Positions 2,784 through 58,430 are shown, counted from the stretch's first letter. The stretch: 64,000 nucleotides of DNA from Selaginella moellendorffii (GCF_000143415.4 NW_003314317.1:1231150-1295149), one strand, 5' to 3'. The notes: generated by a model from the sequence alone, not told the origin. Numbers and translations: made by a program.

Positions 2784-2940
2784 AATCGAAGAGCCCTAAC
2801 ATTTCGAAGGGTTAAAAAAGTGCCAAGGGGAAAAGGATCTTTTAGGGTTTAAAGAAAATTAACGCGGAATTTTTAGGGTTTTGGGAAATGGCGATAGATG
2901 GAGGGTGGTGGAGCGGCTGATTTGCGTGTAGCGATTATTT

Positions 2941-4512
2941 TGTGCGGAATTCAAGGAAGAGTGGCTGACGTCCAATCCACCTACAGGGCGGGCAAAGAAG
3001 GATCTTGAGGAGGAGTTGGAAATTGCTGGCAATCTCAAGATATTTCTCAGGTTTGCTGTCCAGCCTGGGGAGGGCACTTACCGCTTTCGAACCAACACAG
3101 TCGGGCAGCCGGACCTGTTTGTCAAGGGCGCAACAGATCGGCCTCTCATCGTTGGGATTGTCGACTTCCATCATGCTGTAGAAGAAGCTGTAATGTCTGT
3201 CTTGTGGTTTCCTTGTTCATGAACTCATCCAAAGTGTTACAGGAGGCTTTTCACGTACATGATGATCACCGGTGCTTGTTTTGGTGTGGTCGTGGATGCT
3301 GGATCCATCCAGTATGCCAAGATGAGTCAAGGAGACACGCTCCAACTTTACCTGTTCGCTCCGGTTACTGCATGGTCGGCACTCGGTTTTCTGCTTCAGC
3401 TCGCAAGAGACGAACCTGAACCTCCACAGCAGTCGATTGGTGATTACTCGCTAAGCTTATCCAAGCTCACACCCAGGGATTCTCGTGTGGTGGAAAGCTT
3501 CAAGTCCATAGCCAAACAGCACAGGTCATATCATTCAATCGTTCAAGACATGGAGAATCTCAGCTTTGAAAACTTGGAGGATGTCTCTTGCAAGTGGCTG
3601 AGAGACGCTAAGTCATCCGTCGTCTCCGCCAAGTACAAGCAGCAGCAGGTGCGGGACTTGACTACTCCCTGGCTTCTGGACGTGGAGACGTACCTCCGGA
3701 AGGTCATCACCGAGGTGGACGCGAACAAGACGCTCCACACACTGCAGGGCGTGCAGATACCACGCCTAGTCTCGTGGGGCTTCTTGTGTGGGACAATGTT
3801 CGCCTACGTGATGACCAGCGACGAAGGTTGGCCTCTGAGTAGCTACTTGACGTTTAGCGTGCGAGACATACAAGCAGCACTTGCTCCTGCCTATGAGGCT
3901 CTTGCCAGGATTCACGCCAGGGGTCTCATCCACGGGGACTTGACTCCTCCTCAGAAGAGGAAGCAGCAGCAGCCGGTTAAGGTCATTGGCTTCTCCTCTG
4001 CTTCCTACGTCAGCCCCAAGGAGATCCATGTTGCTGCAGGGAGGGAGATGGCTAAGTTTCATCAATGTTTTGAGGAGGTCTTCGAGTTCGTTCGGGTGGA
4101 GGAGGGCATGGCAGTGGATCGCTTCCTCCTTGCTTTGCAGAAAAGCTCGTCGATTGTCCACAAGTTCCCCAAGATTCGAGATCTTCTCAACGCGTACGTG
4201 TATGTTCCAATCGTAGGTACATGTGTGCTTGGTCAACCTGCAAGGAGATGACGACGAGTCGTTATCCAAGACGGGGCATCTGAAGCGTCTGCTTTGTAAG
4301 CTCACGTCTCTCCTGCCGTGTTCATTCTTTTTGATCCGTGTTTTCAGGTTGTCTCACGACTTCAAAGAGTACACATGCTGCTCGATGCGTTGACGGCTCT
4401 GGTCGACAACCCGAAACTCCTTGAAGAGGAGCTTCGCTTCGATGGGCTCATGAGGTTCCTGGCAGATGAAGAAAAGAAACATAAAGGCGCCAGCCTACCC
4501 GCCCTTGCATAA
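2941..4512 (+). CDS. Crinkler-like protein, copy 1: putative PD-(D/E)xK-like region plus protein-kinase-like domain; start uncertain
   Basis: Contains QPDLFV, a 45-bp intron at 3190-3234, CYRRLFTYMMITGACFGVVVD, and kinase-like LQGVQIPRLVSWG...LARIHARGLIHGDL. Paralogues lie at 51.5-52.2 kb and 55-56.6 kb. Confidence 0.6.
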
Positions 4513-4603
4513 TACATGAGCCATTCTAGCAAAATCGCATATCAATCAAGTTCCTCACTGTCCTAACAGATGTTTTTTTATTCTTCACCATTTGTTGTTT
4601 GCA

Positions 4604-4945
4604 ATGGCCACCGCTTGCTGCTACCACGCCCACCTGCGGCTCCACTGCGCGGTGTGCTTGTGGGAATCCATGCCCATGGATCTTGATTGATCGACAAATC
4701 CTTGGATCACGGATGTGCAGCAATTGGTGCTGCTGCACGAAGGTAAGCTTATGTTTTCCTATCGATTAAATGCTGGTTTGCCAACTCCTTTGATCCTGTG
4801 CTAGTGGCCACGACGGAGTTTTCTGCGAATGCGATGGGAACTGCAAGTGTGAGACATGCACCTGTGGCCTCAGGCGAGCCCTTCTGCAAGTGCGGCCGGA
4901 CGTGCAGCTGCGAGACTTTGCTTTTGCCCCAAGCCAGTGCAAGGT
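4604..4945 (+). pseudogene. Metallothionein-like (Cys-rich) gene remnant
   Basis: Removing one T after MATA gives ...TPTCGSTARCACGNPCP...CSNWCCCTK, then a GTAAG donor (~4743), and a second exon ending GEPFCKCGRTCSCET. Confidence 0.45.
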
Positions 4946-5373
4946 TGATGGACTCAACAGGGATTTTTTTTGCAATTTTTTGCCGAACAATATTTTGCAA
5001 GTTTTGCTTTGAGAAATAAATCCCTGACCATAGTTTTATAATTTCAATGCTTTAGATCCTCGATCTTTTGATGAAGAACTGGAACAACGCTCGCTTGTTG
5101 TCATCCAGCTTTCTATACTTCTAAAATCTCTTCCAACGAGGAGATCTTCCATTACCATCATCACGTCCGAAAATCAAAACTCTGTCCGAAAAAGAGAGAC
5201 ATTTTCTCTTCTCTATGGCCTGTGACTATTGGCAAAGAAACGGCAAAGAAGCTGGTCCAGAGTGCTCACCAAGAGGAAGCCATGTTTTCTTGTGAGGCTA
5301 AGCGTTTTTTAAAAATCACTCCATAGTAACATTGTGTGTACTTTTATCCTTAACATTTGGAACCAAGTTTTTT

Positions 5374-5946
5374 TCATTCCAGCAATCCATAAACCAACAC
5401 TTTTGATTCCTCCTCCCAAGGTATTTCCACTTCTATTGTCCGTTGCCTATGTGGCCGGCCACTGGGCAGTCTATCTGGACGTTGTTTCGGGCCTGGATAT
5501 GGAATTGACTCTTCCCATCCCTCCATTCCTGGAACTATCCACAACTCATTTTCCTGTCGACTATCCAAGTATTGGAAGATTTCAGGCTCCATGCCTGGAA
5601 ATAGCAATTTGTTAACATCTTCCCAAATGTAAGGATGCTCCTTTGGGTGTTGATCAACTCTGTAGATACTAAATCTCACCTCCTCCACCTTGTCAAACAC
5701 GCCTGCCAGCCACAAAATCCTCAAAGAGCACAACATTTGCAAGGTGTCTTCATCCATGCCAGTCTCCCAACGCTGGATTTCAAAGTTGTAGCCCCTCCAG
5801 TTCGTCTCCATGGTGATGGCAAGGGCGCGTTCGTTTTTGTGGTAGTGTATCCGTCCCCACAGTGCCACAAACTTTTCAACTATCAAATCTTGAGCTTCAG
5901 CCGGGAGGCTTGAGAGATGCTCAATAAACGTTTTTTCGCTGTCCAT
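5374..5946 (-). CDS. Hypothetical protein, 190 aa, intronless
   Basis: ATG-initiated ORF with protein-like composition and an upstream AAACCTAAACC telobox-like motif. No family recognised. Confidence 0.4.
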   Translation of the reverse strand: MDSEKTFIEHLSSLPAEAQDLIVEKFVALWGRIHYHKNERALAITMETNWRGYNFEIQRWETGMDEDTLQMLCSLRILWLAGVFDKVEEVRFSIYRVDQHPKEHPYIWEDVNKLLFPGMEPEIFQYLDSRQENELWIVPGMEGWEESIPYPGPKQRPDRLPSGRPHRQRTIEVEIPWEEESKVLVYGLLE

Positions 5947-6399
5947 TGAAATTAATAAAACCTAAACCTTATGAGCATTTAAATAGCGTAAAGGCTTAGC
6001 AAAAGGTGACATAACTAATATCCCTTTTTACATTGTTAAGTAAGTAATAATATACAGGAGGGTGCGATGGAAGAAGACATCGATCCCAATTTCAAAATTT
6101 GTTGCTCGGAGCCATAACGCTTCAGGAACTTCCCTCCACTGTGCAACCTCAGCATCATTGGAAAGCACCTTGGACTTAGGAAGAGGTGACACGTACAAGT
6201 TTATGCCAAAGTAGTCACTTCAGAGCCAAGTTAAAACCTCCTGAGCTTGGGCTCCAGAAGGAACCAGACGTGGCGCGGAACGATCTGGTTGAGGATCATG
6301 ATGGAGCCCACGAGAGATCCGGATGCGATACCATCGCCATCTTGCTCGGCTGCTGCTGCGAGAATGAGAGTAACACTGCGTCGCTCTTATTCTGGTGTT

Positions 6400-7620
6400 G
6401 GCGTGAAGATGAAGCCACAACGAAGCTAGCTCCCGCGTATTTTCTAGTAGAGAAAATCTCGTGACTGCCAAGCTCACGACGCTCAAAGAACTGTGTCATC
6501 CAAGGGGTGGGAGATGGAGCTCTCGATCCCCGAGTACGTCCGCAACAACACCCAAACACGATCCACTGGCAAGCCGAATCGCAACCTCACCAGGGGCGAG
6601 CCATTAGAGGACAAGTGCAAAGGCGTCACATTCTCCTGGATCTTCAACGTCACGGAGCCCTCCAGCAGTGGACGCTTCAGCTATTTCGATCGAAGCGGAG
6701 GAACACACCGAGAGTACGTTGTCCAACCAAGTTCACAGGAGGCACAAGTATATACTCTTGCCGGAGTACATGAGGGAAGTCATCAAGCTCGGCGAGAGTT
6801 TGAAGCGACAGAACCAAGACCGGCAGCTCTACGGGGTTATATGGACGCCACGAGCCTGGCGCTGGATCCCGAGCTCAAAAACAAGATCATCTAGGACCTG
6901 AAGTCGTTCATGGCTAGCAAGAAGTTCTTTAGCAGAGTAGGGAGAGCTTGGAAGCGCAGGTATATCTTGTATGGGCCTCCGGGGACGGGGAAGTCGTCAC
7001 TCATCGCGGCCATAGCGAACTACACGCAGTACGATGTCTACGATATGAAGCTGACTGAGGTAAAGAGCAATGCCGACTTGAGGAAGCTGTTCATGGGGAT
7101 TTCCAACAAGGCGATCATCGTGACCGAGGACATCGACTGCTCTCTGGAGCTCAAGAAGAGGGGGAAGCCAGCGCCACCATAGGAAGAAACCAAGAAGAAA
7201 GATAGAGAGCCCAAGAAAAAAGTTAAGAAAAGAGCAGCAGGGTCACACTGTCGGGGTTACTAAATTCCATCGATGGGCTGTGGTCTTGTAGCGGGAGCGA
7301 GAGGATCATCATCTTCACGACGAACCACAAAGAGGATTTGGATCCCGCACTGCTGAGGTCGGGCAGGATGGACCTCCACATTTTCATGGATTCGAGGCGT
7401 TCAAGGTGCTTGCATGTAAGGTCTCGCAGTTTGAGGAAAAGTTTGGAGAGATCGAAGAGCTGATCGTCAAGGTTGATATCACTCCTGCTGACATCACCGA
7501 GGTGTTGATCCAGCGCAGGGGGGACTCTCTAAAGAAAGTGATTGAGGCACTGTAGGATCGAAAGGAGCAGGCTGCAAAGAAAGAGCTGCGACACAAAAGT
7601 CGCAAGCTCGCTTGTTGGAG
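6400..7620 (+). pseudogene. BCS1-like plant AAA-ATPase pseudogene
   Basis: Motifs: AWKRRYILYGPPGTGKSSLIAA (Walker A), TEDIDC (Walker B), VTLSGLLNSIDGLWS and IFTTNHKEDLDPALLRSGRMD. It has in-frame stops (6892-6894, 7180-7182) and frameshifts. Confidence 0.9.
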
Positions 7621-7723
7621 CGCAGACCATTTTTGAGCTCGTGTCAATGAAAGTCAACCCTAACATTTCAAAGCGTTAAAAGTGCCAAAGGGGAAAAAGA
7701 TTTTAGGGTTTAAAGACACCACC

Positions 7724-9004
7724 ATGGCTGTGGAGGACTACGCTGCTAGTCTCGACTCGATCCAGGCAGCTAGGAATCGCATCCAGGGCCAAATCCGCGT
7801 GACTCAGGTGATTACGTCGTCGTCGCTCGATGCGCTCGCCGGAAGGAGCTTGTTCTTCAAATGCGAGCTATTCCAACGCGGGTAAAATCCTTTCTTTCGT
7901 TTTTCCAGTGTAGAGTTCTCCTCTTCGTTCTTCCTCCAGTGGCGCATTTAAGATCAGAGGCGCCTCCAATGCGATCTTCTCTCTCTCGGACGAGCAAGCC
8001 GAGAGAGGAGTCGTGACGCACAGCAGGTAAGAAGATCGAGCTTCCATTCCTTGTCGATGTTCTTTTAGTTTTTGTTCTTGAGTGTTTCTAGATCGTTGCA
8101 GTGGCAACCACGCGGCGGCGGTTGCTCTGGCGGCCAAGCTACGAGGAATTCCAGCGCACATCGTCGTGCCTCGAAATGCTCCAAAGTGTAAAGTCGAGAA
8201 TGTGGAGCGCTATGGAGGGAAGATCTCGTGGTGCGATCCAAGCGTTGAGTCGAGAGAGGCCGTGTGTGCCTCCGTGAAGAGCAAAACCAATGCGGTTCTC
8301 GTCCATCCTTTCAACGATCCACAAGTTATCAGGTGTGAGTTTGACAATCTTCTTTCTCGCTGATGTTCTTGGAGTTTTCTTTTCCAGTGGTCAAGGCACT
8401 GTTGCTCTCGAGTTTCTTGAGCAAGTTCCGCAGCTCGATGTGATCATCGCTCCGATAAGTGGTAATGAACCTTGTTTTTTCTTCTTTGAGCCAGCTTAAA
8501 TGTTCCATCTTTCGTTTGAAGGTGGTGGCTTGATATCTGGTATTTCCATCGCTGCAAAAGCGATCAAGCCCGAGATTAAAATTATCGCCGCCGAGCCAAC
8601 CGGTGCTGATGATGCCGCGCGTTCCAAAGCAGCCAATTCAGTGCAGACGAACAAACAGACTTGCACCATAGCAGATGGACTGCGAGCATCGCTTGGATCT
8701 CTCACTTGGTATTTCAGTTACGTGATATCTTTCCAGGTCTAAAAATGCTTCCTTTAGGCCCATCGTTCGTGATTTTGTGGATGAAGTCGTGACCGTCGAC
8801 GACTCCGCAATCCTCGAAGCAATGAAGATGTGCTACGAGAGGCTCAAAGTTGTAGTGGAGCCGAGCGGAGCCATCGGTCTAGCGGTGGCTTTGTCTGATA
8901 AGTTTCGCTCGAATCCGGCTGTCAAGCATTGCACCAACGTTGGGATCGTTCTTTCCGGTGGAAACTGTGATCTCACAGGACTTTGGGAGTCCCTTCCCAA
9001 CTAG
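7724..9004 (+). CDS. SR: Serine racemase (PLP-dependent), multi-exon
   Basis: Motifs: LFFKCELFQRGGAFKIRGASNA, SSGNHAAAVALAA, HPFND, GQGTVALEFLEQ, GGGLISG, TIADGL, VVEPSGAIGLA and LSGGN, split by short GT-AG introns. Confidence 0.95.
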
Positions 9005-9195
9005 ACCAAGTTCTCTATTCCAATGTAAGGCTTTTCAATGTTTTGTTTTCATTCCTGACGTGTTCCTCTTTCTCTTCCACTTTAAGTATGGCGTGGAATC
9101 TTGGGCAAGGCAGAGTACAAGTCACGTATGACAACTTCGATGAATTGGTAAGCACTCAGTGGTGTTTCCTGTCTGAAACTCTTTTGCCACCTAAC

Positions 9196-11081
9196 TTAGC
9201 TTTCGTGCTGTGACTTCAGAATTTCCATCATGTCATCCACGACCTTGCGTATTTGCTCGCGCGAGTGCAGCGGAGCAGGATAAACAACATTGCAGTGAAG
9301 GCAGCCGTCCCGGATGGAATCAAACAGTGCAAGCGAGGGTCCAACTCCGTGCACGGAAGCACAGCCGACGTAGTCCTCCAGACCAAGCGTGTGTTTCGTC
9401 TCCTCCTCCGACTCGTCAGCTATGACATCCTGGAAGACAACCATGAGAGACGTCCTCAAGGTCCCGGAAGGCGTGAGGTTCGGGTGCTGCAAGGCCTGGA
9501 ACATGAGATAGTTGATATCTCCCATGTCGGTGAAGTGCTTGCGGTTCTTTATGGCGTTGGAAAAAGAGTCGGAGCATCGCCTAGACAGGTCCCAGAAGCC
9601 CGTGTCTTGGTTCACGTGATGCGTGTTCAAGATGGCCGAATGGTAGAATCCTGGATGGATGGAGCAAAGCAGGCTTTTAGAAAGGAAAACGAAGTCACGG
9701 GAACAGGAAGTTTTGGTTTGACAACGTACCAGCAGTGGATCGTGAGAGCGAGTCAATGTGGTTGCGGCAGTCGACGAGGCCGATGATCGCAAAGTGCTCG
9801 GATCTATTGCCGAGCTGCTTGTAGATTGTGGTGGCCCTGAGCCCAGCAGCGACGAGAGCTCCAAACAGGTTGGTTTTCTCGAGAACACAGCGCTACAAGC
9901 ACAGAAAAACGACCCAGGAGTGAGAACAAGATGGAAAGAAGAAAGAGGCTGGGAAGAAATTATTGCCAGGACAAACGAGCTTGGAAGAAATGATAGAGCC
10001 AAAAAAAGCTTCGCAACTCAAGAGAAGAACACCCGAGCAAGCAACCAAAACTATGAAAAAAGTCAGGAGTGAAAACAAGATCGAAAAGGAAAGAAGCTCG
10101 GAAGTAACTATTGCCAGGAAGAAAACATCAACATCGTGGAGACGCGAATTATCTGAGACAAGTTTCGCAGAGGCAGCAAGAAGATCGTAGCTTCGAAGTC
10201 AAGGAAGGAATGATAGAACATGAAAGCATGGATTCAACTTCGCAACTCCAAGAGAACACCCAAGCAAAAAATACTATGAAAACAAAGAAGATCACAGCTG
10301 GGAAGAACTCGAAAAGGATGGAAGAAGATCATACCTTTGTGAGGCTCTTGGTGTGCTCCAAGCTGAGAGAAGCTCGGACGAGCTCCGTCCTCCTGGGCGC
10401 TTCAACGTTGTCAAAAGGAAGCAGTGCATGGCGCAGTGATCCCAGCGAGTAGCCCAGCAAATCCACGCCGTGAGCCCAAAAGGGCTTGTTCGCCTGGCCC
10501 CTGGGAATCGCGTCCTCGATCGAGACAAGCTCCTCCACTCCATCGCCATCTTTTCCTTCTTGCTCGTCATCACCCCTCAGGCGATGGAGGAATTCGGACA
10601 TGATCACCGCGGCCGCGGCTCTATCGCACGCCGCGGTGTGGACTCTGATGACAAAGAGAGATTTCTCGCCCAGGCGGTGGAGGCGAGCGAAGAACACCGG
10701 CACTGGCGCGTCGCGATCCGTCCAGGGATTGGAATTCATCTCGGATTCGATCGTCTGGAGCAGCCAATCTTCGCGATCGTCGTCGCCATGCGCTAGCTCC
10801 TGGATCGCTACAGTGGCATTGGCATTCACCTGGAAGGCGGGCTTGTCGGGCTCGATCCACACCAGCTGCGAGAGGAGGCGCGGATGCCTGGCCAGGACGG
10901 CGTCGAGCGCGCATTGGAAGACGCCCACATTCACGGATCGGCAGAACAAGAGGCCGAGGACTGTGATTCCAGTGCCGCTCTCCACCGCGCGGCACCAATT
11001 GTGCTCCGTGGCGCCCAGGATTCGATTGAAAGGACCTTCCTCCAGCCGAGGCGGTCGTGAGGAGCTCTCATCGTCCGCCAT
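9196..11081 (-). CDS. CoA-dependent acyltransferase/condensation-domain-like protein (exons 11081-10335, 9892-9730, 9650-9196)
   Basis: Motifs: RILGATEHNWCRAV..GTGITVL, HTAACDR (HxxxD-like), FYHSAILNTH and GCASVHGVGPS...VYPAPLHSREQ, typical of this conserved plant family. Confidence 0.85.
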
Positions 11082-12090
11082 AGCTAAAGTCGGGAAGAGT
11101 AAACCTAAGATTATAAAGTAGAACGTGTGGTTTGCCTAAATGTTAGCTTCTTACCTTTAACATATAATAGTAAAGAAATTTGTACCAATTTAGGGCTTGT
11201 ACTATCCAAACCCCAAAAACAATGGAAGGCTCAACTAGAGCAAGAAGACTAAAATATATTCCTTTTGATTTGGGTGCATAAAATTTTCACTACAAGACAA
11301 AGGGTTTTGATTTGATTTTGAGATATTTGTTTGAGAAGGAGGCGACATGGAGGGTTAAAGTGGAAAAAGTGTTTTTGGAATCCTTAAGCTAGTGGTGTGA
11401 GTGCATAAGCTTGGATTTTGATAAGGATTGGAGAGATTTTAGTGGCTCATGGTTGGTTGTGGAAACACTTGAAAGAGCTCTACAAGATGCTATTGTGATC
11501 CTAGCACAAAGAAAATGTTATTTTAATTATGTAAGTCATGTTAAGTGTTATGCTAAAATGCTGTATATATTACCAGTATAATTTGGAAATTTTTAGCTGA
11601 ATATTATCAGCTATAATCTTACATTTATTGTTTAATCAAAGATAATGTTAAAAAAAACATGCAATATCAAGATTATCTTTGTGGATATTATTAAGACCAC
11701 CCATACTATAGTCTCATTTCCTAAAGACTAGGTTATCCATCAATCAGGCCTTCAAACCCTAACTCAGTGGCAGTGTTTGTGAGCACAACCATGGATAGAA
11801 AGGGACTTAATAGGGATCAAAGAAAAGTGTTCCCCATGTCTCCAAACATTTTAAGGATGCTAAGGTGTGGTCATGGGATGAACACTCATGGCATTACGTC
11901 CCATTGATATTTGGGACTTTCTTGACACGTGACTATAACTTTGGTCATTACACAAGAGGATTGCTCTTTTTCTTTTCTATAGTCTAAGACTTTAGAATAA
12001 CATTTCAAAACACCATAGCCTAACCTAAGCTTTGTGGGTATTCTCCTCACCTTCTACCTCTAGGTGCCTAACCATGTGGCTAAAGCAAGG

Positions 12091-13425: not shown

Positions 13426-13890
13426 TGTCCGAGATGGACTCGAGTTGGAGTCCGAAGTGGAGTCCGAGATGGACCCGAGTTGGAGTCCGAAGTGGAGTCT
13501 GAGATGGACCCGAGTTGGAGTCCGAAGTGGAGTCCAAGATGGACCCGAGATGGAGTCCGAGATGGAGTCCGAGATGGAGTCCGAGGTGGACCCGAGATGG
13601 ACCCGAAATGGAGTCCGAGATGGAGTCCGAGATGGACCCGAGATGGAGTCCGAGATGGAGTCCGAGATGGACCCGAGATGGACCCGAGATGGAGTCCGAG
13701 ATGGAGTCCGAGATGGAGTCTGAAGTCGAGACCGAGACCGGGACCGAGACCGAGACCGAGATCGGGACCGAGACCGAGATCGAGGCCAAGGCCGAGACCG
13801 AGCCCGAGCCCGAGCCCGAGCCCGAGTCCGAGTCCGAGTCCGAGTCCGAGTCCGAGTCCGAGTCCGAGTCCGAGTCCGAGTCTGGAGCCT
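13426..13890 (+). repeat. Compound minisatellite within the 5' LTR of B
   Basis: ~35-bp units grade into GAGATGGAGTCC/GAGATGGACCC, then into GAGACC, GAGCCC and GAGTCC hexamer runs. Confidence 0.95.
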
Positions 13891-19398: not shown

Positions 19399-19430
<32 letters not shown>

Positions 19431-19546
19431 TCGGGACCGAGACCGAGACCGAGGCCGAGGCCGAGACCGAGCCCGAGCCCGAGCCCGAGTCCGAGTCCGA
19501 GTCCGAGTCCGAGTCCGAGTCCGAGTCCGAGTCCGAGTCCGGAGCC
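19083..19546 (+). repeat. Compound minisatellite within the 3' LTR of B
   Basis: Same array as 13426-13890 with different hexamer unit counts. Confidence 0.95.
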
Positions 19547-43018: not shown

Positions 43019-43049
<31 letters not shown>

Positions 43050-47607: not shown

Positions 47608-47776
47608 AGCTAGTCGCTCCCGCCTAAACCCTAGGTAGCCGAGTTTTAGGGTTCTTCAAAAAATTTGAAATTGAGCTCCATCTTTTAGGGTTCTTCCGAG
47701 AGAGGCGGAGAAGGCGCTGCTACTCCATGAATCTCTTGCGTCGAGGAGCGAATCTCCAGGTTCTTCTCCTTCTTCT

Positions 47777-50434
47777 ATGCATGGCGCTCCTCTCGGGAGA
47801 AATGGCGCATCATCCACAAAGCTAAAGACCAAAATTTTGGTCTTTCTCGAAGAACTCAAGGAATGTGGCCGATGTGGGGATCTAGACAGGGGCAGGAGGA
47901 TCCATGCCGAGATCGTCCACAGTGGAGACGACTCCAATCTCTACGTAGCAAACGCGCTCATCCACATGTACTCCAAGTGTGGGAGCTTGCCGGAAGCGCG
48001 ACGAGCATTCGACAGGATGGATCATCGCAGTGCCGTGTCTTGGAACTCCTTGATCCTGGGCTATGCCAAGAATGGTGGAAGTGGAATGAATGGGGGAAGT
48101 GGTGGAACGAGATCAAGGAACTTGGAAGAAGCGAAGAGTGGTGGAAGTGGTGGAGCGAGATCAAAGAACTTGGATGAAGCGAAGAATGGTGGAAGTGGTG
48201 GAACGAGATCAAAAAGGTTGGATGAAGTGAAGAATGGTGGAAAGAGATCGAAAAACTTGGATGAAGCACGGATGATCTTCGAGAGAATGCCATGGCACAG
48301 TGTGTTCTCCTGGACGGATCTCATCCACGGCTATGCCGAGAATGGACGCGAAGAGAACGCGCTCGGTTTGTTCTCCTCCATGACTAGCCGAGGCTGCGAG
48401 CCGGATGCTCGGACGTTCCAGGCAGCTTTCAAGGCCTTGGCTGGGCTCGCAGCGAAGGCCAAAGAATCTCACAGGTTTCTCGAGAGAGCCATCGCCCTCC
48501 ACACTCAAGCTGCGAGTTCTTCGTCTTGCGAGTGGGACGTTCTTCTCGCAAACTCGGTGATGGATCTGTATGGGAAGTGTGGCGGCCAGGATCACTGCCG
48601 GATGGTTTTCGAGAGGATGCCACAGCACGACGTCGTGTCCTGGAACGCGGTGATGCTCGGCTACTGCGACAACGGCGAGGAAGAGGTGGCGCTGGAGTTC
48701 TTCGAGACGATGAGAACTCGGGGCTACGTAGCGGACGCCAGAACTTACGTTGCTGCGATCAAGGCTTGCGTCGCCAGCCTGGGAAAGCTCGATCGAGAGA
48801 AAGCTTTCGAGAGAGGGATGGAGATCCATTGTCGAGCTGGAGCTACCGGCTGCGACTCCAACGTTTACGTAGCGGCCTCACTGGTGAATCTCTACGCCAA
48901 GTGTGGCAAGATGGTGGACGCTCGGCGAGTGTTTGACAAGATCTTCCAGCCGGACGTGGTCTCGTGGAGCGCGCTCATACTCGGGTATGCCGAAAACGGG
49001 CAACCCGAGCTGGCGCTGGAACTCTTCGCGCGGATGCAACAGCGGCAGGGAGCTGGATCTTCCGATGCTCTCGCGTTTGTTGCCGCGCTTAAGGCCTGTG
49101 CTCGTCTCGCAAGCTCGGAAGAAGCTCACGGTGATCTCAAGCTCAAATCTATGGCGCTCGAGCAGGGAATGGCCGTCCACGCTCAAGCCGCGAGGAATGG
49201 CTGCGAGCTCGACGTGTTCGTGGCGTCTACGCTGGTGGACATGTACGCCAAGTGTGGCAGCTTGCTCGACGCGAGGAGAGTTTTCGATCGAGTAGCCGTC
49301 CACAACGCGGTGTTCTGGAACTCGTTGATGCTGGGCTACTGCGAGAACGAGCAAGCCGGCTTGGTGCTGGTGCTCTTCCACTTCATGCAGCTCGAGGGCT
49401 GTGGTCTAGACGCTGGATCCTTCGTTCCTCCGCTCAAGGCCTTGGCGAGTCTAGCATCGATCGAGAGGAACCTGGAGATCAAGCCCAACTTGCTCGTCTT
49501 GCGGAGGAGCACGGCCTCGCTCCACTCGCAAGCGTCCGAGCGTGGCTTCGACTTGAATCCCCGGGTGGCGAGCAGCCTCGTCGACTGCTACTCCAAATCC
49601 GGGAGCTTGATCGAGGGAAGGAGAGTCTTCGATCGGATCGAGCAGCGCGATCCAGTGCTGTGGACTTCGCTCATCGTCGCCTGTGCCGACGCCGGTGAGT
49701 CGCAGCTCGCGCTATCTTTGTTCTCTCGGATGAAAGTTGACTTGTCCTTTGCTCTCGCAGTGGACGCTGCTGCTCTGTCCGCGGCGATCAAAGCTTGCGC
49801 GAGTGGCCCGGCGGCGCTGCTCGAGACGGGGAAGAGCGTCCATGGCGATGCATGTCGACACGGCCTGGAAGTCGACCCGGGGGTGGTGGTCTCTCTCGTC
49901 GACTTCTACGGGAAGTGTGGCAGCATGGTCGATGCTCGCTGCGCTTTTGATGCAAGCTCGCAGCTGGGAATGGTGGCCTGGAACGCGCTGTTGGCTGGGT
50001 ATGGTCGCCGAGGTGATAGCAAACTGGTGCTCGAGATGTTCCACAGGGCCGCGGGCGAAGGCTTGCGGCCGAATGCGAGTAGCCTTGTCTCGGTTCTCGC
50101 GGCTCTCAGCGGTGGTGGTCTTGTTGATCAAGGCCGGAGGATCTTCCAGGTGATGGAGTGCCGGTATGGTGTTCGTCCCGGGATGGAGCACTACGCGTGC
50201 TTGGTGGATATCTTGAGCCGGGCGGACAAGATGGATGAAGCTGTGGAGCTTGCGAGGAGGATGTCGAGTGGTGATCCCGGAGACTTCTCCGTTGGCGTGG
50301 CATGGACCAGCATTCTGGCGGCTTGTAGAAAGTGGAAGAACTTTGAGGTGGCAAAGGTTGCTTTCGAGGAGCTGAGAGATGAAGCTCGTCATCCTGCTGT
50401 ATACAATCTTATGGCAAATGCTTGCTCCACCTGA
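47777..50434 (+). CDS. PLS-class pentatricopeptide repeat protein with a partial E domain and no DYW domain, intronless, 885 aa
   Basis: Repeated VANALIHMYSKCG..EARRAFDRM...VSWN motifs, then PGMEHYACLVDILSRA and WTSILAACR. Confidence 0.95.
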   Translation: MHGAPLGRNGASSTKLKTKILVFLEELKECGRCGDLDRGRRIHAEIVHSGDDSNLYVANALIHMYSKCGSLPEARRAFDRMDHRSAVSWNSLILGYAKNGGSGMNGGSGGTRSRNLEEAKSGGSGGARSKNLDEAKNGGSGGTRSKRLDEVKNGGKRSKNLDEARMIFERMPWHSVFSWTDLIHGYAENGREENALGLFSSMTSRGCEPDARTFQAAFKALAGLAAKAKESHRFLERAIALHTQAASSSSCEWDVLLANSVMDLYGKCGGQDHCRMVFERMPQHDVVSWNAVMLGYCDNGEEEVALEFFETMRTRGYVADARTYVAAIKACVASLGKLDREKAFERGMEIHCRAGATGCDSNVYVAASLVNLYAKCGKMVDARRVFDKIFQPDVVSWSALILGYAENGQPELALELFARMQQRQGAGSSDALAFVAALKACARLASSEEAHGDLKLKSMALEQGMAVHAQAARNGCELDVFVASTLVDMYAKCGSLLDARRVFDRVAVHNAVFWNSLMLGYCENEQAGLVLVLFHFMQLEGCGLDAGSFVPPLKALASLASIERNLEIKPNLLVLRRSTASLHSQASERGFDLNPRVASSLVDCYSKSGSLIEGRRVFDRIEQRDPVLWTSLIVACADAGESQLALSLFSRMKVDLSFALAVDAAALSAAIKACASGPAALLETGKSVHGDACRHGLEVDPGVVVSLVDFYGKCGSMVDARCAFDASSQLGMVAWNALLAGYGRRGDSKLVLEMFHRAAGEGLRPNASSLVSVLAALSGGGLVDQGRRIFQVMECRYGVRPGMEHYACLVDILSRADKMDEAVELARRMSSGDPGDFSVGVAWTSILAACRKWKNFEVAKVAFEELRDEARHPAVYNLMANACST
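48068..48270 (+). repeat. In-frame 48-bp coding tandem repeat (NGGSGGTRSKNLDEAK)
   Basis: About 4 degenerate units inside the PPR ORF. Confidence 0.9.
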
Positions 50435-50529
50435 AAAAGTGAAATTCTTCCCGAGCAAATAGCTTGTTTATCTATTGAGAAGAATGGAACGAACGAGCTT
50501 ACAGTACGTCAATGCGATCGAACTCCTTG

Positions 50530-51050
50530 ATCTTTTTTACGCTGCCAGGCTCTTGGAGGCGATCTCAAACACATTCTCCGACAGGACATCGGGTTTAGCA
50601 ATGCGTTCCAGTCGGGCCTAGAAGCACAACACACGTGATTGAGCAAAGATCTGGGAAACAAACACTGCTTCTCCAACCTTAGCCAGCGATTGTCTGCCTC
50701 GAGAAAGGATACCATTCGCAATGCCACCTGTGAGAGCAAGGTTAAGGCACACAAACAAGTGTGCTTGCGAGTTACCTGAAGATTCATTTTGGTCTCCTCG
50801 ACCAAAAATTCGTAACCAAATCAATCTTTTAGCATGAAAGTTAACAGTGGTCCAGCAGAAAGGACTGATCAAAGGCACCAAGAAAAGCCGTAGCTCCTGA
50901 GAAACCTTTGCTAAAAAGACAGAACCTTGTTCGGGTTCTTCATATCGAATGACGGATGATCTAGCAATCGTTTTATGTTCCGAACATTTCCAGGGATATC
51001 AGACATTGATTATGGATCTCCTGCGCGTTGTTTTGTGATCGAATATTTAG
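50530..51050 (-). pseudogene. Truncated, decayed duplicate of the aminopeptidase N 3' exons
   Basis: Colinear with 58519-59030 ([29 protein letters not shown]) but carries deletions. Confidence 0.85.
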
Positions 51051-51080
51051 TGAAATAGAGAAAAAAAGACGATAACACCA

Positions 51081-51134
51081 CAGTACCGTTGAACAAGTCC
51101 AACTACGTCCCAGGAGGAAGCATGCCTGAAAGTT
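51081..51134 (-). pseudogene. Small duplicated SMU1 exon fragment
   Basis: CAGTACCGTTGAACAAGTCCAACTACGTCCCAGGAGGAAGCATGCCTGAAAGTT closely matches 46826-46880. Confidence 0.8.
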
Positions 51135-51494
51135 ATGTAAGAATGCATGAAAAAAAGTGAAAGCAATTATACCCTTTCATTTATCCTTGTTTACAAACAT
51201 ATTGACTTTCATTCTGTGGATGTGAGTTCTTTTGTTTGAATGTGTTTCTTTTAATGTCTTGAATACCTTGGAGTGAGTGTGTCTGTGTGTGGCATTTGCA
51301 ATGCACTTTGATATTGGATCACATGCCTGTGCTTCTTTTGTGTCGTGAGGCCACCATTGGCAAATAAAGAGCAACTGGTTGTGTTGGTGAGAGACAAGGA
51401 AGCACTGCCAGATATTCTATGCCACGTGGCTTGGGTGACTACACTTCTAAGGCGGTACAAGCTTTTCATCTTCCATTCAAGCAACACAGTTACA

Positions 51495-52242
51495 CTCCAC
51501 CTGTGTTGCCTCCAGGAACATCTTAAGATCATGGAAGCGAGGCTCTTCTTCAATGAGCTTTGGGTGTCGACCAGGTCGTCAGCACCTCAATGAAGTCGTC
51601 AATCAACCTGAACACACGAATGAACACGGACATGAACATGGCAGGAGGAGAGACGTGAGCTTACGAATCGGCCTGAGAAGCAGATGCTTCATCCATCTTG
51701 GGTGACTCGTTGGCAACCTGAAATTCAAGAGAGAGGGAGGGAGAGAGAGGGAGATGGAGAGGGAGAGGGACGTACGTATGCATTGAGAAGATCACGAATC
51801 TTGGGGAACTTATGGACAAGCTCTTCCACAAAGCGAGTAGGAAGCGAACCGCTGCCATGCCCTCCTAAGACCTTCTCTAAACATTGATGAAGCTTAGCGA
51901 TCTCCCTCCCTGCAGCAACATGGATCTCCTTGGGGCCGACGTAGGAGGCAAGCCAAATGATCTTAACCAGGAAGACTGGCTACTGCTCCTGCAGCTTCCT
52001 CTTCCGAAGAGGATCTTGAGAGGCGACAAGTCCCCGTGGATGACACCCCTGGCATGAATCGTGGCAAGAGCCTCATGGGCAGGGCACGCTGTAAGAGGTG
52101 TACCTTCATCGCTGGTCATCACGTAGGCGAACATTGTCCCACACAAGAAACCCCACGAGACGAGGCGTGGTATCTGCACGCCCTGCAGTTTGTGGAGCGT
52201 CTTGTACGCGTCCACCTCGGTGACGACCTTCCGGAGGTTGTT
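51495..52242 (-). pseudogene. Crinkler-like kinase-fold gene, copy 2 (5'-truncated, frameshifted)
   Basis: LRKVVTEVDAYKTLHKLQGVQIPRLVSWG...HARGVIHGDL, with 3' exons matching 55070-55270. Confidence 0.8.
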
Positions 52243-52774
52243 CAGGTGGAGTGTAACTGTGTTGCACATGAAGAACAGAAGATGAAAAAGAAATTGAAAA
52301 GCCATAAAAAAGGAAGAAGGAAACCAACCATTGTTGTGTGTTTGCCAAAAACACGGCACTGTTACATGGTTCCAACAAGTATCAAACGCATTCTTTCTTT
52401 CCAGCGCTGGACAAAACCCAGTCAATGCGAAGCCAATAAAGGTCTTCAAAGACTGTGTTGGACTTCCATTGACTACCGTTGAGCTCAATTGTGGACCCTC
52501 CCCTCAAGATCGTCATCCGCGCAACGGCGCCTTCGCGCAGTCGAGGCTCGTCAATCAGGCACAAGTAGTGCTGGACACTCTGGGCGATACCAAACTGGAA
52601 ACGCTCCCGTCCCCGGTCGATCTCTCCGGTGTGAGAGGAAAGTGAACTCGCAAGCTCTCGTCCCTCATTCTCTGGAACAGCGACAATGCGTGATCAGATC
52701 GAGCGTAGACGTTTATGCGGGAAGGCTCAAATGTTTCCAACAGCTTAGCTCGGAGTATCCTTCAATCGAAAGTG

Positions 52775-53074
52775 TTAGAACCTGAATTTCTTATGAATCG
52801 TAGATGCTACTGTTCTACAACGAGCCAACAAGGCGAGTATGTTGTTTACAATGTCTTCTGTTTTTAATGCTTCCGATCTTAATGAACTGAAGGTACCATC
52901 TTCATAAAACCAGCTTTCGTATTGCAGGACGCAGCGGCCGAGCTGGTCTGCCAGGAAAGGTTTTGACACTGTACCTTTGAAAACGGAGCTAGCGTCACGC
53001 TCTTTGTTCTCCAGAGGCTTCATTGGTGTAAGCAGAAAAAGCTCGAGCACAGACAAATCTATATGAGCAACCAT
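52775..53074 (-). mobile_element. Possible hAT transposase relic
   Basis: VAHIDLSVLELFL...LLARCRTVASTIHK resembles the CxAHxLxL...xxKCRxIVxxF region of hAT transposases. Short and isolated. Confidence 0.3.
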
Positions 53075-55059
53075 TAGATGAAATAAAACGAGCAGCTACC
53101 AGCAAGTGAGCAAATTATCGGTGGATGTTTTAATGTTAATGTAGGTGCTCGGGCAGGAGACTTTCGCCGATCGAATTTCGATCGTAAGGAAGATCTTTTG
53201 TTTGTTATCTCAGCTTTGATCGAAGTCTCTCGTTTTCACGAATAACATTTTGAGTGATGTTGATCACGGGAGATTGCAAAACAATTATGCGTAGAACACG
53301 AGCTCGAGTTTTCCAAAGCTGTGAGTTGTTTGGAATGATTATCGTTTTTTCACGCTCTTTCTCCCTGCAGGCATCCTTTGACAACCTACGCTTTCTGACT
53401 GTCATTCTGGAGTACGTGCCTCTTTAAAGTGACCAAGGTTCCATTCTTATGTGCTCAAGAGCCGTTTGCTCTAGCTCACAAGGTTTGTTTGTTGAAACTA
53501 CTCTGAACATGACCGATCGTTGGGCTCTTGTTGCAGAAACCAAAGCTTTCCCTTCTGTGCAACTTGCTGGATCTCTTGCAATCGCCCTGTTCCTGAGCAG
53601 CTGTAATTGGCATTAGCTGCAGACTGGTATATATCTTGTTTTGCAAAGAAACTCTTTTTTTCTTATTGTAGAAAAACGAAGTGAGATCTCATTTTTCACA
53701 ATGCAAGATATTTTTCTTCCTCCTTCCACCAGGTAACCTTTCTTCGTCAACTCCTAGTGCATATTACCTCCAGTCGAAAACCTGGCTCAGCATGCCCAAG
53801 TGAATAAGCTGGCAGAACTGGATCTTAGTCCAAGAAATATTATTGACTCCCTGAGAAGATCACACAGTTCACTGGCGAGGAAAAAATTCACATAATGCTT
53901 GCAAACTGGTGATGCACAGATTGTAAAGTTGACAATGATGTAGATGCTTACAAAGGGATGTATGCCCAAGTGAGGTGTATAATCACAAGAAAAGCGCTTC
54001 AAAGACACTCATAATAACTCATAATAATTATTAATAGGCTAACATTAATCTTGTTAACTCAAAGTAAAAACTTAGATTGCTAAATTTAATTTAATTATTT
54101 TAATTACCAAATTTTTTAGCATATAGTTAATGAGCGAAAAAAGAAGATCACAGAGTAACACTCAATGCCAAAGCTAACACAAAAAATAGAGTTAATATAC
54201 CAATGGCCTAATGCACAGATATAGGTATTCCAATAGCTAGCATAATATGGAATTTGTAACCCCATAAATTAGACACTTAAGTTGGAGGGAAATTTTAAAA
54301 CATCTTTTTTTTACATTTCATTTTACTAAAAAACAAACATGAGTATTATGAGCTATAATGGAAAAATAGAAGAGGATTTCAAGAGAATTAGATTGGCCAT
54401 CACAAATTATGCTTCATTTTCCATTCCAACCTCATTATAAATAGGGTTTTTTATTCAATCTAGTTATACTAAAGAGAACAATTTAAAGTTTAATAATAAT
54501 GCATCCTTTTTCTATTTATTTAAAGGTTTGTTTATATTTAAGGTCTTTAAATCCGATTTTATTGCTAAGATTGATATCTGATACAAAGCATGGTGGATTG
54601 TACATAACCAAATGAAACACTTTTAAAGATAAAAGTTCCAAGTTTTTAAACTAAATCCTTAAATTTGAAACTCCAAGCCAACCAATTTTAACTTATCCAA
54701 TTCCAAACCATCCAACTTTAAAGTATCAAACTGTAAAATTGTAAAAAAAAAAGAGGCAAGGGAGGAAAAAATAATGTAAAAGGAAGTGAAATGAGAAGAA
54801 ATGAAAGATGAAATAAACTATTAAGTGTTATAATTAATCTATATTAAATTTAAGATAGAATATAGTCATGAGTGTTTGTCCAAACTTTGACTAAGAATTT
54901 TATATATTGTAAGAACAAGTGGAAACAAATGTGAAAAAACAAATAAGAAAGTTATGTTTAAAATCCATTTCTAATTATAGCAAAATTTAAGATTTGTTAA
55001 ACCACTAATGGAATAATAATTAAAACATTTATGTATAAATTTCAACTTTCCTAGTATGA

Positions 55060-56620
55060 AATCCAGTTTCACTCCACCTGAACTACTCAGTTGCCTCCTT
55101 TCTGCCAGGAACCTCCTGAGCTCATCGAAGCGAGGCTCCTTTTTAAGGAGCTTGGGGTTGTCAACTGGAGTCGTCAATGCATCGACCACCACATACTCTT
55201 TGAAGTAGCGAGATAACCTGAAAGCACGGATCAAAACGGATAAACACGGCAGGAAGAGAGACGTGCGCTTACATTTCAGATGCTTCAGACGCTTCGTCCG
55301 TCTTGGGTGATGACTCGTCATCTCCTTGCAGGTTAGCACCCAACCTGAAAACCAAGCACACATGTAACGATTGATTGCATCAGGAACACACACGTACGCG
55401 TTGAGAAGATCACAAATCTTGGGGAACTTGTGGAAGACAATCGATGAGCTCTTCCGCAAGGCAAGGAGGAAGCGATCCACTGCCATGTCCTCCTCCGCCC
55501 GAACGAACATCAAGACCTCCTCGAAACATTGCTGAAGCTTAGCCATCTCCCTCCCTGCAGAAACATGGATCTCCTTGGGGCCGACGTAAGAGGCAGTTGA
55601 GAAGCCGATGATCGTCACCCAAGAAGACTGGCTGCTGCGGCTTTCTCTCCTGACGAGGATCTTGAGAGGCACCAAGTCCCCGTGGATGAGACCCCTGGCC
55701 TGAATCCTGGCAAGAGCCTCATAGGCAGGAGCAAGTGCTGCTTGTATGTCTCGCACGCTAAACGTCAAGTAGCTACTCAGAGGCCAACCTTCGTCGCTGG
55801 TCATCACGTAGGCGAACATTGTCCCACACAAGAAGCCCCACGAGACGAGGCGTGGTATCTGAACTCCCTGCAGTTTGTGGAGCGTCTTGTACGCGTCCAC
55901 CTCGGTGATGACCTTCCGGAGGTTCGTCTCCACGTCCAGAAGCCAGGGATTAGTCAAGTCCCGCACCTTGAGAACCACGGGCTGCTGTTTGTACTTCGCG
56001 GAGACGACGGATGACTTAGCGTCTCTCGGCCACTTGCAAGAGAAAGCTGAGATTCTTCATGCCATGAATGATCGCCCCTGCATGAGATGACCTTTGTTGT
56101 TATCTCCGATCGACTGCTGGGGATCGTCTCTTGCCAGCTGAAGAACAAACCCGAGAGCCCACCATGATGAAACTGGAGCGGAAAGTAGCGTGTCTCCTCT
56201 ACTTATCTTGGCATACCGGATGGATTCACCATCCACCAGAACACCAAAGGAAGCACCGGTGAGCAGCATGTATGTGAAAAGCCTCCTGTAACACTTGGAT
56301 GAGTGCAAAGAACAAGGAAAACCAAGCCAGACCTTACAACATCTTGTATAGCGTGATCACAGTCGACAATCCCAACGAGAAGAGGCCGATCGGTTGCGCG
56401 ACAAAGAGGTCCGGCTGGCCAATTGTGTTGGTTCCCCAGGGTGGAGGAAGTTTTGGGCAGCAAACCGGAGAAATACCTTGAGAGTGCCAGCGATTTCCAG
56501 CTGCTCCCCAATTGCCCGCTCTGTGGGTGGATTGGACTTGAGCCACTCTGCATGAGCGTGCTTGAATTCCACCCAGGGGCGCACACCGTTGACGTTACAC
56601 ACCCAGCGCCCGGACGCAGC
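55060..56620 (-). pseudogene. Crinkler-like nuclease/kinase-fold gene, copy 3 (frameshifted)
   Basis: EWLKSNPPT..ELEIAG, GQPDLFV, CYRRLFTYMLLTGASFGVLVD and LIHGDLVPLKILV. Same intron position as copy 1; the reading frame is broken in the 5' half. Confidence 0.75.
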
Positions 56621-56623
56621 AAA

Positions 56624-58430
56624 TTCTTCTTCTATGAATGGGCCTTCTCTCGGGGGAATGACGCATCATCCACGAGCAAAGTCTTGGTCGTTCTCGAAGA
56701 ACTCAAGGAATGTGCCCAAGATGGACATCGTCCACATTGGAGCTGTGGAGCCTCCAATCTCTACGCTCTCATCCCAAATGCACGCGTGACGAGCATTGGA
56801 TCATCGCAGTGCCGTGGCTTAAAATTCCTTGATCCTGGGCCACGCGAAGAATGGTGGAAGTGGTGGGGCTAGATCAAAGAACTGGGATGCAGCCAAGAAT
56901 GGTGAAAGTGGTGGGAGCGAGATCAAAGAAGTTGGATGAAGCGAAGTGAAGAACGGTGGAAGCGGTGGAACGAGATCAAAGAACTTGGATGAAATGAATG
57001 AATGGTGGAAGTGGTTGAAGAATTTAGATGAAGCATAGAATCGATATTGAAGTAAAGCTGACAACCAAGGCGTGGCAGGAGTCTGTCGAAGCCCATTTTC
57101 CAACATATGACTTGGATGAAGCCAAGAACGGTGGAACGAGATCAAAGAACTTGAATGCTGAAAGTGGTGGAGCGAGATCAAAGAATGGAAGTGAAGAGAA
57201 CGCTCTCGGCTTGTTCTGCTATAGCCGAGCTGCGAGCCGGATGCTCAAGCAGCTTTCAAGGCCTTATGGATCTGGTGAATCTTTGTCGCCGCCTGCGCTC
57301 ATCTCGCAAGCTCAGAAGAAGCTCGTGATCTCAAGCTAAAAGCTATGGCGCTCGAGCAGGGAATGGTCGTCCACAATCAACCCGCGAGGAATGGCTGCGA
57401 GCTCGACGTGTTCTGTTGGACACGTACGTGTGGGAGCTTGAGGAGCTTTTGTGTTCTGGAACTCCTTGATGCTGGGCTACTGCGAGAACAAGCAAGCCGG
57501 CATGGTGGTGCTGCTCTTCCCCTTCATGCAGCTCGAGGGCTGTGGTCTAGACGCTGGATCCTTCGTTCCTCCGCTCAAGGCCTTGGCGAGTCTAGCATCG
57601 ATCGAGAGAAGCCCGGAGATCAAGCCCAACTTGCTCGTCATGCGGAGGAGCACGGCCTCGCTGCACTCGCAAGCGTCCGAGCGTGGCTTCGACTTGAATC
57701 CCCGGGTGGCGAGCAGCCTCGTCGACTGCTACTCCAAATCCGGGAGCTTGATCGAGGCAAGGAGAGTCTACGACCGGATCGAGCAGCGCGATCCAGTGCT
57801 GTGGACTTCGCTCATCGTCGCCTGTGCCGATGCCGGTGAGTCGCAGCTCGCGCCAGCTTTGTTCTCTCAGATGAAAGTTGACGAGTGGAAGCTGCTCTGT
57901 CCGCGGCGATCAAAGCTTGCGGGAGTGGCCCCGCGGCGCTGCTCGAGACGGGGAAGCTCGTCCATGGCGATGCATGTTGACACGGCCTGGAAGTCGACCC
58001 GGGGGTGGTGGTCTCTCTCGTTGACTTCTACAGGAACATGGTCGATGCTCGCTGCGCTTTTGATGCAAGCTCGCAGCTCCTAGAGCGCGCTCTTGGCTGG
58101 CTATGGTTGCCGAGGTGATAACAAACTGGTGCTCGAGATGTTCCACAGGACCACGGACGAAGGCTTGCGGCTTGAGCGTGGTGGTGGTCTTGTTGATCAA
58201 AGCCGAGAGTGCCGGTATGTGTTCGTCCCGGGATGGAGGACGGATATCTTGAGCCGGGCGGACGAGATGAGTGAAGCTCGCGAGGACGATGTCTAGACGA
58301 AGCGGTGGTGATTTCTCCGTTGGCGTGGCACCAGCGGCTTGTAGAAAGTGGAAGAATTGAGGTGGCTTTTGAGGAGCTGAGTGGTGAAGCTGTATACTAT
58401 CTTATGGCAAATGCTTGCTCGACCTGAAAA
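56624..58430 (+). pseudogene. Decayed duplicate of the PPR gene at 47777
   Basis: Near-identical core (FWNSLMLGYCEN...ACADAGESQLA), but with many deletions, frameshifts and stops. Includes the Gly-rich repeat. Confidence 0.92.

Follow-up and report, generated by a model that had tools for sequence, protein, structure and literature searches.

Three decayed copies of a family of fused restriction endonuclease-like and kinase-like domains seen in Selaginella moellendorffii: probable passengers rather than agents of duplication

Three related copies of a gene that appears to join a restriction endonuclease-like (REase-like) domain to a kinase-like domain lie in a 64,000-nucleotide stretch of the Selaginella moellendorffii genome (scaffold GL377621.1, ~1.231-1.295 Mb), which is the whole of the DNA analyzed here and is called the window below. 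The question that they raise is whether such genes move, or make the breaks from which neighboring tandem duplications arise, as an original prediction from the sequence had suggested, or whether they were merely carried along when the DNA around them was duplicated. The answer to which we would assign a probability of roughly three in four is that they are passengers and not agents, namely relics, paralogous to one another, of a small family seen in S. moellendorffii alone. This family is proposed to join a REase-like N-terminal domain to a short kinase domain resembling those of Rio, Bud32 and Kdo. Its copies in the window would have arisen by ordinary segmental or tandem duplication at the DNA level in a region rich in PPR genes, and gene conversion would then have taken place between copies 1 and 3. 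The subfamily appears to be dying in the window, with the N-terminal leader absent from all copies, copies 2 and 3 reduced to pseudogenes, and copy 1 open on this haplotype only and deprived of key kinase residues. This reading is built on direct observations of fold resemblance, of decay, of synteny on the second haplotype and of an indel load like that of neutral DNA.

Comparison of the window with itself places copy 1 at 2935-4512 on the + strand, copy 2 at 51463-52243 on the - strand and copy 3 at 55064-56618, likewise on the - strand, and finds no fourth copy inside the window. Copies 1 and 3 share 76-82% identity (self-blastn, E 4e-101 to 0) and copies 1 and 2 share 71% (E 5e-118), copy 2 being ~71% identical to either of the others. 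At 71-82% identity, the three related copies are thus where the original prediction had put them, and the motifs QIPRLVSWG and HGDL that it read in each are indeed present in copies 1, 2 and 3. Its description of copies 1 and 3 as full-length is mistaken, as both lack the N-terminal residues of their paralogues as well as a start codon of their own. The public gene models for the three copies are SELMODRAFT_422464 (P0001, which is copy 1), 422475 (P0003) and 422474 (P0006).

The family to which the copies belong is narrowly distributed. Queries for similarity were either exon references or the public model P0001, and a phmmer search with the latter against 1.8 billion representatives gave 15 hits, all from S. 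moellendorffii except one short metagenome kinase fragment; save for that fragment, no sequence homology outside Selaginella was detectable among these representatives. With haplotype partners included, the family amounts to about a dozen full-length proteins of 418-497 amino acids plus relics, and a profile word-search with the family alignment recovered, among the matches listed, only close kin of P0009. Pfam scans of the window's open reading frames (ORFs) and of all family members gave nothing above threshold, with sub-threshold matches to Pkinase, Kdo and RIO only and no match for the N-terminal domain.

Structural comparison is more informative about both domains. We used AlphaFold models of the copy 1 protein (P0001, pLDDT 47.6), of which residues 95-160 are the best-modeled part, and of the full-length paralogue P0009 (pLDDT 62.1). 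In an exhaustive structural search with the copy 1 model, REase folds top the ranking, with matches over residues 30-188 to BpuSI (Z 8.3, 125 residues aligned), Vibrio vulnificus HsdR (3h1t, Z 7.2), TT1808 (Z 7.2) and 9y1l (Z 7.1), and with further matches to 3ijm (Z 6.5), DrdV (Z 5.9) and EcoR124I HsdR (Z 5.7). Foldseek with the same model gave no match below E 0.001, its weak matches forming a consistent mix of REase and kinase folds. ESM Atlas models of P0009 (residues 55-235) and P0001 (36-180) have structural neighbors at TM 0.59-0.78; those of both queries include Crinkler(PF20147)+Pkinase proteins of Mucoromycota (TM 0.71-0.76), and HSDR_N clusters are found for the copy 1 protein and SPOK2_N clusters for the paralogue (TM 0.78, feature score 0.90-0.91). 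Further Atlas neighbors are fungal FunK1 kinases and bacterial HSDR_N, BpuSI and Eco57I nucleases. The order of motifs likewise agrees with a REase fold, in that the PD motif opens strand 2 and the helix that bears QxxxY in RecB/HsdR nucleases has its counterpart in one with RLxxY.

The C-terminal half of P0009 matches only kinases and pseudokinases (Foldseek E 4e-7, with CASK, PINK1, Rio2 and PRPK; VIA-align Z up to 13.8). Whole-model Foldseek gave at least 500 matches at E <= 0.001, all of them kinases or pseudokinases among the matches listed; as kinases filled the whole-model searches, the N-terminal domain of this paralogue was compared through its Atlas model (55-235) only. The PDB sequence matches examined for another protein, P0002, were all kinases, and weak sequence similarity was found to Rio2, RIO1 and Kdo. 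A bilobal kinase-like fold is thus present in P0009, and we call the N-terminal domain nuclease-like because its REase matches are consistent and the order of its motifs fits that fold. With moderate confidence, the copies can be described as a REase-like fold followed by a short kinase-like fold, the build of Crinkler and Spok proteins. The fusion of nuclease and kinase domains first recognized by eye therefore holds at the level of fold and at that confidence (BpuSI Z 8.3 and HsdR Z 7.2 for copy 1; kinase Z 13.8 in P0009), and the structure prediction that had been suggested as its check returned REase-fold matches for the copy 1 protein (Z 5.7-8.3).

An examination of the conserved features suggests that neither domain has kept its chemistry. 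The N-terminal part of the family is marked by G-x-PD, then hhGhh-x-h-(D/E), then RLxxYMxLT...G(V/L)V, after which a linker leads into the kinase-like part; the latter begins with VVxK-x-RDL and EVDxY..L..LQG..IP.L..(Y/W)GF..G.MF and goes on to IH.RG..HGD and (L/I)xGF(G/S)xA. Most members retain the PD motif. At the (D/E)xK position, no member of the family alignment has a lysine, the residues there being DFH (copy 1), DCD, DFF, TLD, AMD, AME or ELD, which agrees with the early remark that an ExK motif was not evident. The catalytic D...(D/E)xK triad of an active PD-(D/E)xK nuclease is accordingly found in none of them. In the kinase-like domain the helix-C glutamate is retained, and so is the strand-3 lysine in most members, with a deletion of the latter in copy 1; HGD occurs in some members only, and the catalytic-loop asparagine is mostly absent, this region being scrambled in copy 1. 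The DFG aspartate is present in 0 of 13 members (the position reads GFG, GFS, GYS, GLS, TMS or SMS), which leaves the family without the residue set of an active protein kinase. Both catalytic centers therefore look degenerate across the family, and as every member lacks both the lysine of the nuclease and the DFG aspartate of the kinase, the family probably no longer cuts DNA or phosphorylates.

The decay of the individual copies goes beyond these residues. In copy 1, all on the + strand, exon 1 (2941-3194) covers the first half of the REase-like domain (GQPDLFV...IVGIVDFH) in a frame that opens at 2932, after a TAG stop, and contains no ATG; exon 2 (3243-4212) covers the rest of that domain (RLFTYM...FGVVVD), the linker and the kinase-like domain; and exon 3 with the stop codon lies at 4348-4512. 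Between the first two lies intron 1 (3195-3242, 48 nt, GT..AG), whose position recurs in copy 3, in both second-haplotype alleles, in the copy 2 allele of that haplotype and in a fourth copy outside the window (L002, described below), but not in the distant paralogues P0009 and P0012. The earlier statement that copies 1 and 3 have an intron position in common is correct for this first intron. On this haplotype, the frame of copy 1 is open over 462 codons and its splice sites are canonical. A 12-nt deletion in this allele removes the strand-3 lysine of the kinase-like domain. Two further deletions, of ~11 nt and ~10 nt, together restore the frame but leave the catalytic loop scrambled downstream of HGDL. 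None of the copies, the fourth included, has the N-terminal leader that full-length paralogues possess; copy 3 is short of ~50-60 residues and copy 1 of a few more, and the loss exceeds that of copy 3 in the rest as well. An F-box-like gene stands head to head with copy 1 (first exon 2553-2783, - strand), and because only ~150 bp separate the two there is no room for the missing N-terminal part; the first exon annotated for copy 1 (2106-2204), which lies beyond this opposite-strand gene, is not credible.

Copy 2 is reduced on this haplotype to the kinase core and C-terminal part, with internal deletions. Its N-terminal half, missing here, is still present in the second-haplotype allele, and at the site of the loss there is an inverted copy of its own 3' end (52243-52288, no strand assigned), which matches 23/23 nt with 51481-51503 in inverted orientation and a further 16 nt with 51463-51478 (88%). 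This lesion looks like a deletion with templated inverted fill-in that is specific to this haplotype. The result is a copy bracketed, on this haplotype only, by a perfect 23-nt inverted repeat, with ~560 bp missing there that are kept in L001 (14744-15305). Copy 3 has frameshifting deletions of 19 nt and 4 nt in its REase-like part and deletions of 76 nt and 17 nt further on, and a 335-codon ORF is left over its kinase part. Copies 2 and 3 can thus be classed as pseudogenes.

A tract at 3555-3920 of copy 1 (no strand assigned) is 95-100% identical to copy 3 (~55690-56060), as against ~83% elsewhere. The dS between the two copies is 0.065 inside this tract but 0.25-0.39 outside it, a contrast that indicates gene conversion between partners 52 kb apart and in inverted orientation. 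We also considered the conserved core common to all copies as a functional non-coding element and rejected it, dS being low there in the copy 1/copy 3 pair only. For substitution counts, in which exons were concatenated solely to define codons, the copy 1/copy 3 pair has a dN/dS of 0.42-0.46 and the remaining pairs have 0.55-0.8, and polarized changes number 14 synonymous and 21 non-synonymous on the branch of copy 1 and 10 and 19 on that of copy 3. Such values point to relaxed constraint, with copy 1 not clearly different from copy 3, a known pseudogene.

Comparison with the second haplotype bears most directly on mobility. On the right side, L001 (GL377575.1) is colinear with 47030-64000 and has the order PPR-A (an intact PPR gene), copy 2, copy 3, PPR-B (a PPR relic) and a peptidase M1 gene; on the left side, L004 (GL377571.1) is colinear with 1817-11747 and has copy 1 at the same site. 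The allele of copy 3 on L001 has a set of deletions different from that in the window, and in the L004 allele of copy 1 several deletions of 5-14 nt shift the frame and a 114-bp segment is inverted in place. The inversion occupies L004 12039-12152, equivalent to window 3815-3928, and is 99% identical to the opposite orientation of the window. As the copies are syntenic on second-haplotype scaffolds, all three are judged to predate the haplotype split and to have decayed independently since then on each haplotype. The original prediction had proposed a search for empty sites on the other haplotype and had named stable syntenic copies as evidence against its idea; all three sites turn out to be occupied.

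Between haplotypes, copy 3 differs by 8 indels per kb and 3.9% substitutions and copy 1 by 12 indels per kb and 3.8% substitutions (outside the inversion). The corresponding values are 13 indels per kb and 5.5% for the PPR-B relic and 5-16 indels per kb and 3.0-4.8% for spacers where these are cleanly aligned, as opposed to 0 indels and 1-2% substitutions in intact ORFs (PPR-A, a 190-aa ORF, a PALP-domain gene and the F-box-like gene). The copies behave as neutral DNA and not as break hot spots, gaining indels no faster than most of the non-coding DNA that flanks them. Terminal repeats or target-site duplications that might mark element ends were found at none of the three copies. None is present on one haplotype and absent from the other, and the copies are not near-identical and dispersed, being 70-82% alike. 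The proposal that the family moves or drives duplication is not upheld by three copies that are syntenic, decayed, devoid of catalytic residues and of element ends, and loaded with indels like spacers.

Several points weigh against the reading of the copies as dying passengers and deserve to be set out together. Both structure models are of low-to-middling confidence (pLDDT 47.6 and 62.1), and REase Z-scores of 7-8 lie in the range where it is the consistency among matches, and not their height, that counts. The family is not dead as a whole, as both haplotypes have intact full-length paralogues that agree at 96.5-98.7% protein identity, of which P0012, at least, consists of a single exon; because of these intact paralogues, the family as a whole may retain some non-catalytic role. 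The haplotype comparison excludes movement only since the haplotype split and is silent on the origin of the old duplications. Finally, the frame of copy 1 has been kept despite three allele-specific coding deletions (one in-frame, two compensating), an outcome with a chance of roughly 1 in 9, and its branch has an omega of ~0.5; because of this survival of the frame and of this omega, a residual non-catalytic function of copy 1 is possible.

The last of these points leads to a rival explanation in which only copies 2 and 3 are dead and copy 1 is still a working gene for a non-catalytic pseudo-nuclease/pseudo-kinase, for example a scaffold or an immune decoy. In keeping with such a role are the 462-codon frame with its canonical splice sites, the frame-preserving character of all the coding deletions specific to this allele, the dN/dS of 0.42-0.46 against copy 3, and a promoter region with telo-box motifs that copy 1 has in common with the divergent F-box-like gene. 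Yet the first exon has no start codon and its annotated predecessor lies beyond that opposite-strand gene; the other allele is full of frameshifts and carries the inversion; the load of substitutions and indels between alleles equals that of spacer DNA; the ratio of synonymous to non-synonymous changes on the branch of copy 1 is no better than on that of copy 3; and the searches gave only the older SELMODRAFT model. On this balance we regard a working copy 1 as unlikely.

A second rival concerns what the family once was. In the Spok proteins, a PD-(D/E)xK nuclease domain resembling HsdR kills and a Kdo-like kinase domain protects (Vogan et al. 2019, PMC6660238), and the copies in the window could be what is left of a selfish drive family of Spok-like, single-gene killer-rescue (toxin-antidote) type, which would have spread through the lineage in the past and have lost its activity since. 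The order and type of the domains match those of Spok (PMC6660238), SPOK2_N clusters are among the closest neighbors in structure (TM 0.78) and in features (0.90-0.91), and V. vulnificus HsdR, which is the best HHpred hit of SPOK3 (PMC6660238), is also a top fold match here. A family that is confined to one lineage, at least partly intronless (P0012), multicopy and in many of its copies decayed would be compatible with such a past. Against this stand the lack of any sequence-level link to Spok or Crinkler families, the failure to see a Spok-type cysteine cluster by eye in the aligned family sequences, and the loss of the catalytic residues of both domains in every member, and we consider descent from such a drive family very unlikely.

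Least credible, to a degree that leaves it almost without a claim, is the view that the family is an active mobile element or that double-strand breaks made by its nuclease give rise to the tandem duplications around it: it can point to a real REase-like fold, to copy 3 adjoining the edge of a PPR duplicate, to the PPR genes or fragments beside 3 of 4 subfamily loci and to two small haplotype-specific inversions or inverted fill-ins within copies, but all copies are syntenic on the second haplotype, have no terminal repeats or target-site duplications as element ends, are decayed, are old because only 70-82% alike, share in the family-wide absence of the catalytic lysine and have indels at 8-12 per kb, within or near the values of the PPR-B relic and spacers (5-16 per kb), and the 60-bp repeat is a promoter module.

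That repeat, which had been taken for a duplication breakpoint at copy 1, is real, its two members being ~85% alike where 0 matches are expected by chance. The first (2794-2855, + strand) is placed 11 nt ahead of the start codon (ATG) of the divergent F-box-like ORF, with copy 1 beginning ~90 nt further on; the second (7658-7716, + strand) lies 8 nt upstream of the annotated start (7724) of the PALP-domain gene, PALP being a domain of the pyridoxal-phosphate enzyme family. Both carry CCCTAA...TTTAGGGTTT (telo-box) motifs. For the telo-box AAACCCTA, the window has 9 occurrences where 1.7 would be expected (at 1700, 2843, 2874, 7704, 11754, 34859, 35806, 47626 and 54442), mostly just upstream of gene starts, including that of PPR-A. 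Telo-boxes are common promoter elements of plants. Because the module carries such elements at the 5' ends of genes, the 60-bp segment is a promoter module and not a duplication scar.

The junction at copy 3 has a similar outcome. PPR-A (47777-50434, + strand) is an intact gene of 885 codons with 0 indels and 1.9% substitutions between haplotypes, and PPR-B (56626-59037, + strand) is its degenerate duplicate, 78% identical, with broken frames and present on both haplotypes; it starts ~12 nt before the position of the PPR-A ATG and ends ~600 bp past the stop. Homology between the two sets in at 56620-56626, immediately adjoining copy 3 at its 5' end, and homology between copies 1 and 3 ends within ~10 nt of the edge of PPR-B. 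Copy 3 does abut the start of the PPR duplicate at 56620-56626, as had been noticed, and what it abuts is the edge of an old PPR pseudogene and not a sign that the copy drives duplication. No clear poly(A) tail or target-site duplication, as marks of a retrocopy, was found at PPR-B. A simple tandem unit of one copy and one PPR gene was considered and rejected, because a search of the DNA that separates copies 2 and 3 found no coding sequence resembling PPR-A; at least two events are required for the order PPR-A, copy 2, copy 3, PPR-B. On the simplest reading, the ends of the copies would be the ends of old duplicated segments.

The two PPR sequences also have tandem units of ~48 nt (GAATGGTGGAAGTGGTGGA...GATGAAGCGAA), in the 5' part of the PPR-A ORF (48088-48270) and again in PPR-B (56849-57200), which correspond to a repeated 16-residue unit in the N-terminal region of a PPR protein. 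A fourth decayed copy of the same subfamily (models P0004 and P0007) stands tail to tail with another PPR gene on L002, which belongs to GL377571.1 (L002 positions 9447-10723 and 13409-15949), and a 170-nt fragment resembling that gene is found just upstream of copy 2 (52531-52700). The subfamily thus recurs beside PPR sequence, 3 of its 4 loci being next to PPR genes or fragments.

The remaining features of the window concern its assembly and its repeats. A gap at 40605-41304 (no strand) lies ~10 kb from the nearest copy and outside every copy. Its left flank has spliced-looking sequence of some other gene, and at 40400-40604 the gap cuts an apparent exon-intron stretch of that kind, the exon MNSIARISPKDGRVVGWIVLDAL preceding it; the ORFs that appear to span the gap are spurious products of its run of N. 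Since the second haplotype has the counterpart of the left part on one scaffold (GL377571.1) and that of the right part on another (GL377575.1), copy 1 is linked to copies 2 and 3 solely by the join that this scaffold makes. Between 12000 and 29500 there is a nested and repeated block of long terminal repeat (LTR) type with 12-nt and 35-nt tandem arrays, in which 13196-14891 equals 18853-20544 at 96%; this block differs from the second-haplotype scaffold.

As they stand, these results describe the routine genome decay of a lineage-specific gene family. For annotation, SELMODRAFT_422464, 422474 and 422475 are better treated as relics or pseudogenes, the name "Protein kinase domain-containing protein" overstates these three models, and the 60-bp repeat should be recorded as a promoter module. 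More generally, a vascular plant that is free-living has a family of its own whose proteins are built, like those of Crinkler and Spok type, from a nuclease-like and a kinase-like domain, and both catalytic centers of this family appear degenerate. This agrees with the published notion of modules derived from toxins that are retained outside pathogens and degenerate there. The family would gain greater importance only if an intact paralogue proved toxic or drive-like.

With respect to known systems, the family resembles the Crinkler (CRN) or CR effectors in having a REase-like domain followed by a kinase-like domain, and in copies that are lineage-specific, numerous and often decayed. PMC12957317, citing Zhang et al. 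(2016, NAR 44:3513), places CRN homologues in land plants. Unlike Crinklers, the window copies lack any N-terminal leader; the PF20147 header (ubiquitin-like, LxLFLAK-type) was not found in the ORFs of the window or in the 15 family members, even at E up to 10; phmmer against the 1.8 billion representatives detected no sequence homology with Crinkler/CR families; and the nuclease lysine and kinase DFG aspartate are missing. Moreover, Selaginella is a free-living plant, and hence these are not secreted effectors. The kinase-like domain has its closest counterparts in the minimal kinases Rio, Bud32 (PRPK) and Kdo and in CASK, with which it has in common a short fold that ends soon after the DFG-equivalent strand and which supply its top fold matches (CASK, Rio2, PRPK and TkArkI). 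It differs from them in being fused to a REase-like domain, in the replacement of the DFG aspartate by Gly, Thr or Ser, in the mostly absent catalytic-loop asparagine and, in copy 1, in the deletion of the strand-3 lysine.

The comparison with Spok of Podospora and other Ascomycota combines both halves of the protein. In each case, a domain of HsdR-like fold with a QxxxY-type helix (here RLxxY) and, after it, a Kdo/ELK-like kinase make up a single polypeptide; the close structural neighbors of the family include SPOK2_N clusters, and the HsdR structure 3h1t is a common best template. The differences are that the catalytic lysine of Spok (K240 in SPOK3) has no counterpart in the Selaginella family, that the metal-binding aspartate of the kinase is missing in the latter, that the C-x3-C-x13-C-x5-H-x7-H cluster (PMC6660238) was not seen by eye in its aligned sequences, and that the host is a plant and not a fungus, the Selaginella family having been compared by fold only. 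On the defining features tested, its sequences place it outside both the Crinkler and the Spok families, and today it probably functions as neither. We think it highly improbable, even a little more so than the drive history considered above, that the Selaginella family is a plant counterpart of Spok-type single-gene killer-rescue elements, a selfish toxin-antidote family once spread through the lycophyte lineage, of which the decayed copies and the intact paralogues would be the remains; were this the case, any member that survives could continue to distort transmission or take part in cell death.

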